This document shows, piece after piece, positions 873-6,466 of a DNA stretch of 64,000 bases. The notes under the pieces are model-generated. The model saw nothing but the letters and a program-made list of their open reading frames with translations, had not been told where the DNA came from and ran no database searches. The position numbers and the translations under genes are program-made. Every line of letters begins with the position of its first letter. Within the stretch, counting starts at the first letter, position 1. The DNA comes from Magallana gigas (Eukaryota), in NCBI RefSeq assembly GCF_963853765.1, contig NC_088854.1, forward strand, positions 54,932,001 to 54,996,000. Reading direction: 5' to 3'.

Positions 873-1419
873 TATGAGGACTATCACAGACCATGGATAT
901 TTTATAAATTCTGTACAAAACTTCAGAGCATAGATAACGTAAGTATTTTCTCCATTATATTCATTATATTTGCCCTTAATAAACCCATAGTGTAAATCTG
1001 AAAGTATGTAAATCTATATATTTTTTTTATTCTAAGCCTTTTTATTTCATTCTTAAAATAAGACATCCATATGTTATCTTCTAAGATTAATATTAATGAG
1101 TGATTGGAAGCTATTTTTAAAAATTGTCTTGGTTTGTCACCTTTCGTAAAACATGAGATGATTAAAAGTCCTTGAAAAATTGTAAGCTCTTTCTTTTGAA
1201 ATATGATAATAATGGCCATTACAACAGATTTTAATGTAATATTTTTTTAATCTGCGGCTATATATACTACCGGGTGATCCATTATTTCTTATATATAAGT
1301 TCACTAAGAAATACCACTTCATAATTTTCATTCTCCAAACAATTGAGGAGAGAGTCCTCTCAAAAAACGAGGGGGTTGTTCTTGGTGTTTGCCTATGAAT
1401 GGTTTAACTCGGTTAACTC

Positions 1420-1520
1420 GGTCCATTTCAGGACCAGGTTGATTTTTGAATGTGCCTTTGGTTGGTTGAAGAGACGATTTTACGTACTTAATGCTGAAAT
1501 CCGGATTACACCGAAAAAGC
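1420..1520 (+). mobile_element. PIF/Harbinger transposase C-terminal relic
   Basis: ORF 1343-1537 contains HFRTRLIFECAFGWLKRRFYVLNAEIRITPKK, resembling the R..IER.FG.LKRRF..L..E.R motif of Harbinger/HARBI1 DDE nucleases; recognised by eye only. Confidence 0.55.
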
Positions 1521-2242: not shown

Positions 2243-2453
2243 TACTGTGGTTTCATCAATATTCGATGAATACCAATTTTCGTGGATTTCGTTGTTGAGT
2301 TGATCCATGAAATTAAATGTTCATTGAAATGCAATTTCTATTAAGATTTTGTATTGAAAGGGTCATTGGCCACGAATTTACGTATCCTTGAAACTGTGAC
2401 TTTCACTTTATCCACGAAAATTGATACCCTTGAATATTAATGAAACCACAGTA
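2243..2453. mobile_element. MITE (TA-ended TIRs)
   Basis: tactgtggtttcat ... atgaaaccacagta terminal inverted repeats. Confidence 0.75.
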
Positions 2454-2805
2454 TGTATCTTAAGTGTACTTTCAGAAGCATGCAAAATTGGCAGTCATAT
2501 TCTGAGAGCCAGTTGTAGATGACGAACAGAACGTGGACTTCGATTGGTGTATCCAATGGTAGTTCAACGGACCCAAAGAACATTGAGAAATATGTTAAAC
2601 TGCATTATTTTTAAAACCTCCATTTGCTGTAGATGGAAATGTTAAGTTTAGTTGCTATTCTGTATTGTTATTTAATCTATATATCGAAAACTAGTCACAT
2701 TACATCGGTAAAATTTTATAAAGCAGAGCATTTAACAGATGTATCTTAGCTACATTTATAAAATTAAACATCAGAAACACAATTTGATGTTTTGTTTTTA
2801 ATAAC

Positions 2806-2808
<3 letters not shown>

Positions 2809-2840
<32 letters not shown>
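2809..2840 (+). repeat. (GA)n microsatellite
   Basis: Uninterrupted GA run. Confidence 0.95.
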
Positions 2841-2843
<3 letters not shown>

Positions 2844-2938
2844 CGTATGTTCAGAATTTTATACAATTACTGCACTTATTTGTTAAACATCACAACAGTA
2901 TGTATAACAAAAGTAGAAAAGAGGTATATAAGAATTGT

Positions 2939-5367
2939 TCAATGATCGATGATACTTGTTATGTTTTTAGCTAGTTCTCGGATAGGCATTTTCAGCCGAC
3001 GTAGCATTTCGTTCATGAACATGTAGAAAGTCGTTTCCTCTCGTAATTTCCGTTCTTGCTGTACCAAGACGGCGTACTCCATTCGTCTTAAATCCTTGGG
3101 TCGAATCTTCTTACGCTGACCCATATTTGTTACATTTTTTGACCTATAACGCATAAAACTTTATATTTATTTATCATTAATTCAGCGGTGAACCTTTGAA
3201 CTAATTAATACACAAAAATATGTGTAGTTACAGAAAAAACTTAATGCCGCCTTCCCAACATTTATTAGATAATTATTGTGAAAGTCAAAATCATTTAATA
3301 AGAACAATAAAAAGTAAGAATGAATTGTGTTTACACGCTTGGCTCATTGTAAGTCGTCGTTTTAGTGACGGTACTAGATGTAGAGTTTACTACCGCTACG
3401 GTGACTACATTCCTGTTATCCTGTGTCTGCTTAGAAATGTTGTAAGTGACTGTGCTCTTGTCTCCTTCATCTTTGTTTCTTTCGTCTGTAATGATAATTG
3501 CTTCAATGAAATAATTTTGCAAAATATATAACACTCTACAATGAGATTTCAGTGCGTTAGAAAAAAAACTGCTGAACAAAACAATTGTATCTTAGAAATG
3601 GGTCTGGTTATACTTAGCAATAATGGTATAGTTAGCAAAATTAAATGTTAATATAGGAATGACTGTATACATTTTTTTGTTCATCGATAAATGAATCTAA
3701 AAACCGCATCGCAAACTTTATGAAAGCCGAAGGCTTTCATACAAAAGTTTGCGGTGCAGTTTTTAGATTCATTTGTCGATGAGCAAAAAAATTATACTGT
3801 CAATGCTTATATTTCAATTTCAAACACAAATGTTGTATATTTAAGCGAAATTTATTGTAAAAAGCAAGAGTTAACAAGAAACAAACAAGGTCATGAAATT
3901 AACACGCGGAGTGATTTACTCGAGGGGTTGTTTATTGTGTATTACTCTTGATCTGGCTTTACATTTACATTGATTGAACAATTTTGAAAAACAGAATTGT
4001 TTATAAAAGATATATTTGAGGTTTGTTTTTTCAACAGCGATTGTTGAAACAGGTATGCACCCTCACTGCCCTGGTCGTCGGGATAGTTGGACCCCGCACC
4101 GCCATCGCTCGCTGATGCCAAGCTGGAGAGAGTCTTGCTTATTGCGAGTTTCTGGTTTCCCGAGCATTTTCTCGCATAGTTGCGGATAGAACCTTCGTTT
4201 CTGTGTCCACTCAATAACATTATATGACGAAATTCTATTCCTGCGTCACTAAGCGCCTGAATGCTAGTTGCTCGGAGGCAGCGTGCTGTGTACCGTTGTT
4301 TACACTTAACATTTTTGGATATATCACACATAAAAAAATCCTCATCAATTTCTTGCAGAAAATTTAAATCTTCACCATTTTCTTCCATTTCTAGTCTCAC
4401 TTTGAAATCTCCGTGCTCATCCGATTCCATCGAGAAAATGATTTATTATTCTTGCAGACGTTTATGTATATTTCATTTCCTTAACAAATACTACTATAGC
4501 TAATGTTAATCTTCTGCACCATTCATACATGTATTTCTATTTTGTATGGTATATATAAAACTAAAAATCGTTATTGTTTCGATGCACTGCCAATGGGTTA
4601 GTATTGAGTCTGTGCAGAAAGTAGAACGCTAAACTCGCATTCATCGAGCTATGAACGGAAAAGAGCGTAATGGTGAGAGATGGGAAGAAAGTGATATACA
4701 CAAAGAAAATTGAATTATATGAACATTTTTAAGAGGTTCTGGAAATGTCAGGTTCACAAAGATGAATAAAGCAAGTGAATGGTTATTTGAAGAAGAAAAA
4801 TTATTCAATATCTCAATTCTTACTTCCTATCTTTAGTCGTCCTCTGTCCCCAGTTTCAGGAATGTTATTTGTATTTTGCTGTCCATTTTCTCGTTCCTTG
4901 GGATAGGGAGTAGACTCCATAGAGTTAGGAAAGTTTTCTCCCACACACATTCCAGATTCGGGAAATTTTTCGCATTTCAAACTTTCTGGCCACTCAAATC
5001 CAAATTTATTCATTAACGTTTCGCATCCATTTCTCGCTTTATTACACAGAGAGCGACACGGAGGAATTGGCTTCCCCGAAACGGTGCACACGGGAGCATA
5101 CAAAATACACAGGAAAAACTGCAGTTTAGGGCTACACTGGACTTTCACAAGGGGAAATAACTGATGAACCTCTAGTCCGGCGTCTTCTTGTTTTTGATGG
5201 TTTAAAAGATTTGGCATCATAGTCCATTTATAAGGCATGTTTTTGCATGATGGAATCGAAATCGGTTCACATTTACCGTGAGATGGTAACACTCTTTGTC
5301 CATTCCCAATTACAATTACAAATGCAAGGCGCAAAAAGAGAGACAGATTCGCTTTTAAATTTGCCAT
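2939..5367 (-). CDS. Secreted Frizzled-CRD protein without TM domain (3 coding exons: 5367-4824, 3485-3335, 3143-2939; 299 aa)
   Basis: Exon 1 has a signal-peptide-like N-terminus ([23 protein letters not shown]) and a complete 10-Cys Fz CRD with FZD1/2/7-type motifs ([36 protein letters not shown]). GT-AG junctions at 4824/3485 (phase 1) and 3335/3143 (phase 2) are phase-compatible and give an unbroken 900-nt CDS. The CRD exon is secure; joining of exons 2 and 3 is predicted. Confidence 0.65.
3706..3757. repeat. Hairpin next to the Crypton relic (possible element end)
   Basis: gcatcgcaaactttatgaaagcc-gaa-ggctttcatacaaaagtttgcggtgc is an imperfect inverted repeat. Confidence 0.6.
3942..4430 (-). 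mobile_element. Crypton-type tyrosine recombinase relic (internally deleted)
   Basis: [18 protein letters not shown]...[16 protein letters not shown] matches the C-terminal HxxR...GH...Y catalytic part of Crypton-like recombinases, with H replaced by R in HxxR. The N-terminal catalytic Arg region is absent and the ORF is only 162 aa. Confidence 0.75.
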
Positions 5368-6466
5368 ATCAAAATTTTCTAAATGCAGTGCATTTACTCG
5401 TGAAGGCAATGCATGGGTATTGAAGACTTAATGTAATGATCCTAGAATTAAAAGAATACTGATAAGTCGTTCCCGCATCTAATAAATGTCTTCAATAAAA
5501 CGATTATTAATATTTATATTCCTTCAACTTCTATTTAAGTTTCTAGATCGTTGAAATATATTACTACATGTACATGTACAAACAAAACCGTATAAACTGA
5601 GATCTAGAAACTTTTGGATGCGCATACTCATATACTTAAGAGGTCTGTATAATAGACTAAATGTATATACATGCATAATTATAACATACACAAAGAGAGC
5701 TCGGTGTAATGGCATTTTAACATCATTGTTTGATACTTGAAATATGAATAATTTTAGGAGTTGCATTGAAGTGCTTTGATGACAAAAGCTTCTCTAAACA
5801 AATAAAGAAGAAAAAAGATGCCTTTCTAAAACAATTTACTGTACTTTCACATTAAAATTTCTATGATGTACATGTACTTGTGATCCTTGCTAGATGTACA
5901 ATGTACGTTATATACCATTGACCTAGTTGTGCTAGATGTACAATGTACGTTGTATAAATTTTAACAATGTCTTTTGTAGGAGGGTTTTCTTTGCATTTTA
6001 AATATTGCTTTTACGGAGATGAAATTGCATTCATTTTTCCCTGATGGAATGTGTATTCTACGGATACTAATGTGTAATAAGTAGCACTGCAATGTATATA
6101 CATGTAATGAAAATATAATTAAAGTTTACGAGGGTTCTTTGGTCTCTGCAAATAAAACACTGTGTTGATCTCCTTAAAAAGATCAAAGTACTGAAAGTAC
6201 TGAAAGACGGGGTCTTAAAAGTTTGAATGTTTGTAAATGTCCACTTTTTCCTCGAATATGAATCTATGTTAAAATTTGGCTTTTTGCAATTGCCTGATAC
6301 CTTGTCAAAGTTTTACTGAATCCCGGCCGGTACTGACCTTCATGATTTAAAAAAATTAATGAAATAAGACCCCAACGAAATTTTAAAAAAAAAATACAAC
6401 TAACCTGGAAAATTAAAACAACTATATCAAGGTAGATAATTTAAATCATAAGATTAATTTAATTTT

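Follow-up and report, generated by a model that had tools for sequence, protein, structure and literature searches.

How did the ligand-binding head of a Frizzled receptor come to be encoded on its own in an oyster genome, and what may such a protein do? The question is raised by a 64,000-nucleotide stretch of Magallana gigas DNA (hereafter the window, C2:54932001-54996000), in which an initial annotation, made from the letters alone, had described on the minus strand at 2939-5367 a secreted protein composed of a cysteine-rich domain (CRD) of the Frizzled-1/2/7 (Fz1/2/7) type and two downstream exons of other origin. The gene proves to be a real, transcribed, three-exon chimera, and the account given here, in which an Fz1/2/7 duplicate joined to exons of a PIF/Harbinger transposon would act as a secreted Wnt-binding modulator, is considered reasonably probable as a whole. 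The genome that carries the window is AT-rich and 564 Mb in size, and the closest annotated proteins come from Crassostrea gigas and C. angulata. Coordinates are window positions unless prefixed by C2, C6 or L.

Transcription and gene structure

Logan contigs from three RNA runs of different studies (X7, X12 and X1) and raw poly-A reads of a fourth run (X21) were mapped to window positions 2400-5800 at a likeness of at least 97%. The joint 3485>4824 (CT..AC on the plus strand) is supported by three raw X21 reads and by contigs from each of X7, X12 and X1, and the joint 3143>3335 by one raw read and by contigs of X7 and X12; both splices predicted by the initial annotation (4824>3485 and 3335>3143) are thus spanned by RNA at the sites where they had been placed. 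Record 9 of X12, a contig of 671 nucleotides (nt) with two mismatches (99.7% identity), spans 2852-3140, 3333-3485 and 4824-5014, and so carries both exon 3 and exon 2 together with 191 nt of exon 1. The corresponding exons of two tandem copies described below (B and C) differ by 3-8% from those of the window copy (A), which identifies the source of this spanning transcript as A or one of its alleles. Among the raw reads, first mates map to the plus strand, the orientation that a minus-strand RNA would give in a standard stranded library.

Exon 1 lies within an open reading frame (ORF) at 4813-5409 on the minus strand, starts with the ATG at 5367, and ends in a phase-1 donor (A/GTAAG after 4824, with GT at 4823-4822; the slash marks the exon boundary). 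Exon 2 is entered through an acceptor at 3485 (..ttacag/A) and left through a donor after 3335 (T/GTAAA); exon 3 follows an acceptor at 3143 (..tatag/G) and closes with the stop codon TGA at 2941-2939. Splicing by hand and by script gave an uninterrupted frame of 900 nt encoding 299 amino acids (aa).

A genome-wide search for the seven-transmembrane (7TM) domain of Frizzled receptors (PF01534), with all 12 candidates scored, recovered five genes, of which four are intronless full-length Frizzleds and the other has several exons, and found no match in or near the cluster to which the window gene belongs. Downstream of exon 1 the window extends for only about 4.8 kb, which leaves room for the view that the CRD exon merely opens an ordinary full-length Frizzled gene whose 7TM exons lie outside the window. 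This is exceedingly improbable: no exon 1 junction to anywhere except 3485 was seen in the RNA contigs and reads, the transcript terminates after the exon-3 stop codon, and the only 7TM matches on C2 are those of an intronless Fz1/2/7 gene (55.05 Mb) and another Frizzled (33.56 Mb). Splicing of exon 1 to a 7TM-encoding exon was an outcome that the initial annotation had named as refuting it; with no such splice in the RNA and no 7TM in or near the cluster, this main objection is removed.

The gene model is not new, contrary to the way in which it had first been presented. Two NCBI models have identical joins: P0001 (XP_011421677.1) of C. gigas, named "frizzled-7-A" (296 aa), and P0003 of C. 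angulata, named "frizzled-1-like isoform X2" (294 aa), both of which read ...KIG-N-ERNKDEG... and, further on, ...IIDH. The model is therefore already in the databases, under a misleading receptor name. A literature search found no published paper on XP_011421677 or this oyster gene.

Two further RNA contigs depart from the three-exon transcript. Record 19 of X7 (4642-4853, six mismatches) is unspliced across the boundary of exon 1 and intron 1; if this retention of intron 1 is real, it would yield a tail-less CRD protein of 185 aa ending in ...GSKN, as the Logan ORFs P0004 and P0005 do. One X1 contig diverges at 5410, with 31 unrelated letters upstream; this may be an allele, a chimeric assembly or the trace of an alternative 5' exon.

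Protein domains and predicted structure

The hydrophobic N-terminus of the product was called as a signal peptide, inherited from the parent gene. A Pfam scan placed the Fz domain (PF01392) in exon 1 with E=2.1e-34 over profile positions 1-109 of 110, and the product contains exactly ten cysteines (residues 33, 41, 78, 87, 94, 104, 108, 115, 132 and 141), all in the CRD. The nearest solved structures are the CRDs of human FZD7, FZD2 and FZD1 (E ~1e-55 to 2e-56, with 2e-56 for FZD7), followed at lower rank by those of FZD8 and FZD5 (~1e-41) and by sFRP3 (2e-33). The signal peptide and intact ten-cysteine CRD of FZD1/2/7 type are both present as first annotated. A membrane anchor and a netrin (NTR) domain are, as had also been described, absent from the 299-aa frame: in the spliced product no transmembrane segment was found past the signal peptide, the highest 19-residue Kyte-Doolittle mean being 1.36; exons 2 and 3 gave no NTR match in Pfam scans; and the tail is devoid of cysteine.

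In the AlphaFold model of P0001, a signal helix is followed by a CRD modelled with a predicted local distance difference test (pLDDT) score of 88-97. Residues 150-240, comprising the linker and the Ser/Thr-rich exon 2, are disordered (pLDDT <50 in exon 2), and exon 3 forms helices at 244-278 and 283-295 (pLDDT 70-78). Read from the sequence, the product consists of a signal peptide, a CRD of the Fz1/2/7 type, a linker of about 95 aa that is rich in Ser/Thr and disordered, and a basic tail with two helices; it has no membrane anchor.

The cavity of the human FZD7 CRD that receives a fatty acid is lined by F86, P88, L89, V92, L134, M135, F138 and F140 (PMC6333880). These residues map to the motifs HQFFPLVKV and LMNKFGF, and all eight are identical in copies B and C; seven of the eight are identical in the window copy, according to the structure-match alignment, the exception being the conservative substitution F86L.

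Two other, weak Pfam candidates, ATG8 in exon 3 (E=3e-4) and PDE8A_N in exon 2, were rejected because both are below gathering scores and because homology to Harbinger elements, described below, explains both exons. A search of the ESM Atlas for look-alikes of the tail returned no usable match.

The parent gene and the origin of exon 1

The initial annotation had proposed a partial duplicate of fz1/2/7, and a parent for it was found 111 kb from the window gene on the same strand. It is an intronless gene at C2:55047270-55048978, encoding a protein of 568 aa with a CRD, a 7TM region and the C-terminal sequence ESNV. Homology between the window gene and this parent is limited to 4895-5455 (84% nt identity; 84-85% across the copies) and takes in the signal peptide and CRD, with about 90 nt of 5' untranslated region (UTR) before them and the start of the linker after them. 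Detectable homology stops short of roughly the last 24 codons of exon 1 and of its donor site. On this nucleotide evidence, exon 1 is a partial duplicate, about 0.56 kb long, of the intronless Fz1/2/7 gene.

A phylogeny of the CRD against Fz1/2/7 and sFRPs had also been called for, and it answers in part: the copies fall within the oyster Fz1/2/7 group, but as members of a polytomy in which the parent CRD has a branch length of zero. The tree was not used for dating because its 115 columns are too short, and it does not settle whether the two-CRD genes of Saccostrea share the Crassostrea duplication. A contig of run SRR27362814 (L025), treated as a CRD-only copy from what is apparently another oyster species, allows a comparison of synonymous divergence (dS). 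Values for copies against parent (0.21-0.27) about match those for the window copies against L025 (0.24-0.29), and with some 100 synonymous sites, and gene conversion with the nearby parent possible, dS does not resolve which event came first.

A second CRD-only duplicate is present at L036:4246-4752 (C2:33618245-33618751, minus strand) as an open frame of 169 aa. It matches an intronless receptor of the Fz5/8 type about 58 kb away (C2:33.56 Mb) at 90% protein identity and at 95-97% nt identity over about 1 kb that includes the 5' flank, and it is very recent and independent of the window gene. Partial 5' duplication of intronless Frizzleds seems to be recurrent in this genome. P0013, examined as another CRD-only relative, was discarded as the CRD of a full-length Frizzled in another organism, with its 7TM region called just downstream.

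Transposon origin of exons 2 and 3

The exon-3 peptide has four matches in the genome: the three CRD-only copies and C6:38273537-38273710. The latter lies in a decayed PIF/Harbinger transposon that reads along the minus strand. Its Myb_DNA-bind_5 exon (E=5e-8) is frameshifted and ends in a phase-1 donor (...ACT G/gtaagt). Next comes a segment resembling exon 2, with a near-identical acceptor (..cattacag/ACGAAAG), the same open frame and a similar Ser/Thr-rich end, and then a segment with 65% protein identity to exon 3 of the window gene (E=3e-20). Past these exons, and encoded by the other strand, lies a DDE_Tnp_4 transposase (E=1.4e-24).

When exon 3 was searched exhaustively by phmmer against 1.84 billion proteins, seven were matched, P0240-P0244 among them. 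In P0243, a spliced product, segments resembling exons 2 and 3 follow the C-terminal half of a Myb domain, and P0241 is, like it, an independent spliced protein with the same exon order. In the assembly of another mollusc (L037), the P0243 locus shows the same layout in five parts, with a convergent transposase at 73-87% identity. The arrangement of a Myb exon, a Ser/Thr-rich exon, a basic helical exon and a convergent DDE_Tnp_4 gene is therefore confirmed at both the C6 locus and L037.

Further parts of such an element are retained in the window and in the neighbouring copies. A transposase remnant at 1330-1519 was detected by tblastn with the C6 transposase (E=5e-13) and by Pfam (DDE_Tnp_4, E=0.012), has nucleotide matches to C6 at 1329-1387 and 1413-1513, and occupies the relative position and orientation that it has in elements of the intact type. 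In copies B and C, relics of the Myb exon survive within the first intron, at intron positions ~700-1110, with 43-49% protein and 72-81% nt identity to C6. In the window copy this stretch has been swapped for an unrelated 1.1-kb segment (3620-4702); intron 1 of copy A can be aligned with that of B only at its ends (intron positions 1-121 and 1205-1338). The expressed window gene has no Myb domain. The downstream exons whose recruitment the initial annotation had proposed can thus be named: by homology and frame, exons 2 and 3 are the native 3' exons of a PIF/Harbinger Myb/SANT-like gene, read in their original frame, and the basic cluster in the tail was probably once the nuclear localisation signal of the Myb-like protein.

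The route to the chimera can be reconstructed from these pieces. Some 0.5-0.7 kb came to separate a truncated 5' copy of Fz1/2/7 from the Harbinger Myb-like gene downstream of it, either because the fragment landed there or because the element inserted behind it. A GT just past the duplication breakpoint serves as a phase-1 donor, joining exon 1 to exon 2 and then to exon 3 of the Myb/SANT-like gene in the decayed neighbouring transposon. As the first intron of the transposon gene is itself of phase 1, its two 3' exons are read in their native frame, and from them come the tail, the stop codon and the 3' end. The Myb exon, now skipped, decayed into the relic seen in B and C and was deleted from the window copy, and the entire unit was subsequently triplicated in tandem.

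Tandem copies and older relics

The gene is not single-copy but one of three tandem copies. The CRD exons of copies B (C2:54899224-54899820) and C (C2:54868590-54869186) have 95% nt identity to that of A, and both copies possess exons 2 and 3 in the same order. Copies A and C are intact, the latter encoding 296 aa and being essentially P0001. In copy B (C2:54897494-54899778) the CRD exon is fully intact; its transcript, owing to a lesion in exon 2 considered below, is probably a target of nonsense-mediated decay or the source of a tail-less product.

Relics of an Fz1/2/7-type CRD lie about 5-7 kb downstream of each copy, two of them 5.2 kb apart in unit C. They share an internal deletion, stops within the frame and the replacement of a Cys by Tyr, from which it follows that an earlier partial duplicate was already dead at the time of the triplication. 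They illustrate what CRD fragments at this locus look like once they are unconstrained.

Selection

The comparison with L025, whose nt identity to the window is 83% over exon 1 with its flanks and whose exon 1 ends identically, points to constraint over the longer term. The ratio of nonsynonymous to synonymous differences per site (pN/pS) of the three copies against L025 is 0.49-0.62, and the binomial P for a ratio (omega) below 1 is 0.008-0.049; for the parent against its ortholog in another oyster, pN/pS is 0.20. All ten cysteines and the frame of exon 1 have been kept in six sequences (A, B, C, L025, P0001 and P0003), for which about 8.5 nonsynonymous hits on cysteine codons would be expected under neutrality (tree length ~0.32 dS units, P ~2e-4). 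Our reading of these values is that the CRD fold has been under moderate purifying selection in this family over the long term.

The recent history of the copies is of another kind, and weighs against the view that the product now serves as a Wnt modulator. Among the paralogs pN/pS is 3.07 for A-B, 1.14 for A-C and 0.62 for B-C, none significantly different from 1, and exon divergence (5-6%) is close to that of the alignable introns and flanks (6-8%). When changes are polarised with the parent, the branch leading to copy A carries 12 nonsynonymous and no synonymous substitutions (p=0.056). One of them, N47K, converts NWT to KWT and abolishes an N-glycosylation sequon after Cys2 that Frizzleds share, and three more lie in the loop between Cys5 and Cys6. 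Exon 3 shows little constraint, with dN/dS of 0.36-1.05 between copies on very few changes, and the protein from which the tail was taken is a nuclear DNA-binding one. Finally, a 1-nt deletion in exon 2 of copy B (54897878-54898027) brings a TAA stop 17 codons into that exon. Tests for omega above 1 were not significant (p=0.056 and 0.078) and are suggestive only, and positive selection is not claimed. A neutral ratio, which the initial annotation had taken as a sign of a pseudogenic fragment, is what the recent paralogs are compatible with, but not what the comparison with L025 shows. We read the period since the tandem duplications as one of relaxation or diversification, between which the data do not distinguish.

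A rival possibility is that the gene is a young chimeric by-product, a 5' fragment of Fz1/2/7 spliced by chance to transposon exons, with little or no function and drifting towards a pseudogene. To the ratios near or above 1 between copies, the similar divergence of exon and intron, the 12:0 count with its loss of a conserved glycan site and the premature stop in copy B may be added the older relics, whose shared stops and lost cysteine show that CRD fragments do decay at this locus, and the transposon derivation of the tail. A mere by-product would not, however, be expected to show pN/pS significantly below 1 against L025, ten cysteines and an open exon 1 maintained in six sequences, conserved lipid-groove residues and spliced RNA in several independent studies. 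This explanation is accordingly thought possible but on balance doubtful.

Function

The most likely function, as far as sequence can indicate it, is that of a soluble Wnt-binding modulator. Such a role is plausible because the lipid groove and the disulfide cysteines have been kept and because long-term omega is below 1. The protein would be secreted, and its CRD would bind the palmitoleate and the finger of Wnt as the parent CRD does; by holding lipid and finger it would titrate or redistribute Wnts outside the cell, in the manner of sFRPs and soluble Fz CRDs. The effect on signalling may be antagonism, or potentiation at low dose: a soluble Fz8 CRD modulates Wnt3a signalling in a biphasic manner (PMC4068752). 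The tail is most likely a passenger that might, speculatively, contribute at most heparan-sulfate binding or oligomerisation.

A different role, as a fast-evolving decoy or binder of a ligand other than Wnt (a pathogen toxin, an adhesin or another lipidated ligand) amplified through conflict, would account for the tandem triplication, for the nonsynonymous excess between recent copies and on the A branch, and for the grouping of changes in surface loops that follow Cys2 or separate Cys5 from Cys6. Mammalian Fz1/2/7 CRDs are moreover known receptors of a toxin (PMC6333880). The decoy is nevertheless improbable, since omega does not exceed 1 significantly in any test (p=0.056-0.078), long-term omega is about 0.5, and nothing ties expression of the gene to infection. 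TcdB, for its part, is the toxin of a mammalian gut pathogen, and we know of no oyster pathogen factor that targets Frizzled. The present data hold no supporting evidence for a toxin-decoy role.

A broader possibility combines elements of both: the three copies may be a rapidly diversifying, oyster-specific set of soluble Fz1/2/7 heads, each with an altered ligand specificity (suggested by the changed surface loops and the lost glycan of the window copy), shaping Wnt gradients or serving as decoys for a pathogen factor that targets CRDs, with the Harbinger tail co-opted for heparan-sulfate tethering or oligomerisation in place of the NTR domain. This is an unlikely conjunction; if true, it would mean that a transposon had supplied a functional replacement for the NTR domain of sFRPs.

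Other features of the window

The features of the window gene and its surroundings are collected in Table 1. At the end of the 3' UTR is a (CT)n/(GA)n microsatellite (2798-2851), where the RNA contigs halt and which was skipped in read mapping. The segment specific to intron 1 of copy A contains a fragment of a tyrosine-recombinase-like ORF (3942-4430, minus strand; weak Phage_integrase match, E=0.028), and the many-variant RNA contigs over this region are consistent with a transcribed multicopy element. Outside the gene, at 2400-2456, RNA word depth rises to about 31,000 (X7) and hundreds of raw reads continue into unrelated sequence on both sides; this may be a short, highly expressed repeat or a piece of an abundant RNA or mobile element.

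Table 1. Positions of the window gene (copy A), its parts and associated remnants
Feature	Position	Strand	Evidence or remark
5' UTR, with approximate transcript start	5368-5482	-	RNA contigs to 5473 (X12) and 5482 (X7); homology to parent 5' UTR to 5455
Exon 1 coding: signal peptide, Fz CRD and 40 linker residues	4824-5367	-	Pfam; FZD7 match; RNA junction
Predicted signal peptide, ~aa 1-23	5299-5367	-	Hydrophobic N-terminus
CRD proper, Cys1 to Cys10, aa 33-141	4945-5271	-	Ten cysteines; AlphaFold model of P0001
Segment homologous to intronless Fz1/2/7 parent (84% nt), extent of duplication	4895-5455	-	blastn against L012, C2:55048468-55049025
Intron 1, 1338 nt, GT..AG	3486-4823	-	RNA joint 3485>4824 in four runs
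Replacement segment in intron 1, specific to copy A, noncoding for the gene	3620-4702	.	Comparison of A and B introns
Exon 2, 151 nt, Ser/Thr-rich, predicted disordered	3335-3485	-	RNA joints on both sides; C6 element; P0241, P0243
Intron 2, 191 nt, GT..AG	3144-3334	-	RNA joint 3141/3143>3333/3335 in X7, X12 and X21
Exon 3 coding, 67 aa and stop, basic two-helix tail	2939-3143	-	C6 element; phmmer P0240-P0244
3' UTR as far as RNA contigs reach	2852-2938	-	X12 record 9 from 2852; X7 record 15 from 2866
Decayed DDE_Tnp_4 C-terminal remnant, convergent with exons 2 and 3	1330-1519	+	tblastn; Pfam; nt matches to C6
CRD relic of copy A	L013:7083-7892 = C2:54929083-54929892		~2.1-2.9 kb before window start
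Equivalent CRD relics of the other copies	L014:4423-5240; two in L016		

Comparison with known systems and significance

The window gene resembles sFRP1/2/5 and sFRP3/4 in its signal peptide, single ten-cysteine CRD of Frizzled type, lack of an anchor and expected extracellular binding of Wnt. It is not an sFRP, because an NTR domain is lacking and the CRD belongs to the Fz1/2/7 receptor type rather than to the sFRP clade; the origin of the gene, moreover, is independent, recent and within the oysters, and its C-terminal module is transposon-derived. With the Frizzled receptors it has in common the signal peptide and ten-cysteine CRD, but it possesses neither the 7TM region (PF01534) nor the cytoplasmic KTxxxW motif, and for want of the 7TM region it is not a Frizzled receptor.

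A closer parallel is provided by FzCRD-1, -2 and -3 of Platynereis dumerilii and by a gene of Aplysia, which consist of a signal peptide and a Frizzled CRD only, and which have been interpreted as recent CRD duplications of an ancestral frizzled-related gene that are likely secreted Wnt binders (Bastin et al. 2015, PMC4669655). The window gene fits this architecture and origin, with a signal peptide, one CRD, neither 7TM nor NTR, and derivation by duplication of the CRD part of a gene. The source differs, FzCRD-1 of Platynereis being derived from sfrp3/4 and the oyster gene from fz1/2/7, and the oyster gene is distinguished by a parent 111 kb off, a defined breakpoint, a transposon-derived 3' half and three tandem copies. 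No such gene is listed for Crassostrea in the same survey (PMC4669655). By its domain content, the window gene is a lineage-specific CRD-only Frizzled-related gene, of a class already known in other animals.

In FZD4S and recombinant soluble Frizzled CRDs, a receptor CRD has likewise been freed of its 7TM region, and the effect of such soluble CRDs on Wnt signalling can be inhibitory or enhancing, according to dose and context (PMC4669655, PMC4068752). These are products of alternative splicing or engineering of a receptor gene, whereas the oyster gene is a separate, duplicated locus. Secreted-type proteins with Fz1/2/7-like CRDs only, as in the window gene, are also found in Saccostrea, where two-CRD proteins are encoded (P0002, named 'sFRP4-like', P0164, P0165 and P0170), and in teleosts, as multi-CRD 'frizzled-like 1' proteins (e.g. 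P0142), but these have at least two CRDs in one exon (L026) and lack the Harbinger tail. Synonymous sites are saturated between the Saccostrea and Crassostrea genes (dS >2), and the two are not joined in the CRD tree; the Saccostrea two-CRD genes are probably an independent or much older duplication. At L026:10001-10945 of Saccostrea echinata, a single-exon secreted-type gene encodes two tandem Fz1/2/7-like CRDs, with no 7TM within 10 kb. P0164, P0165 and P0170 are 367-391 aa in length and have a hydrophobic C-terminus.

Host genes built from PIF/Harbinger parts are exemplified by vertebrate HARBI1 and its Myb-like partner NAIF1, in which, as in the window gene, Harbinger coding sequence has entered a host transcript. 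In contrast to these, the oyster gene has taken only two 3' exons of the Myb-like gene, without the DNA-binding domain, and the predicted secreted context excludes the original nuclear function.

The locus offers an unusually complete case of gene birth, in which the parent, the breakpoint, the cryptic donor, the captured exons, the decaying Myb exon and the subsequent amplification can all be traced in one genome. RNA establishes the transcript that resulted, and the gene is a clean example of exon capture from a transposon. Because existing annotation labels it a Frizzled receptor, counts of such receptors are inflated. To the mollusc Wnt toolkit it would add a soluble CRD of the Fz1/2/7 type, derived from a receptor and unlisted in surveys of lophotrochozoan frizzled-related genes. 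If Wnt binding proves true, the gene would represent an independent reinvention of the sFRP strategy, with shell or larval patterning as a candidate role.

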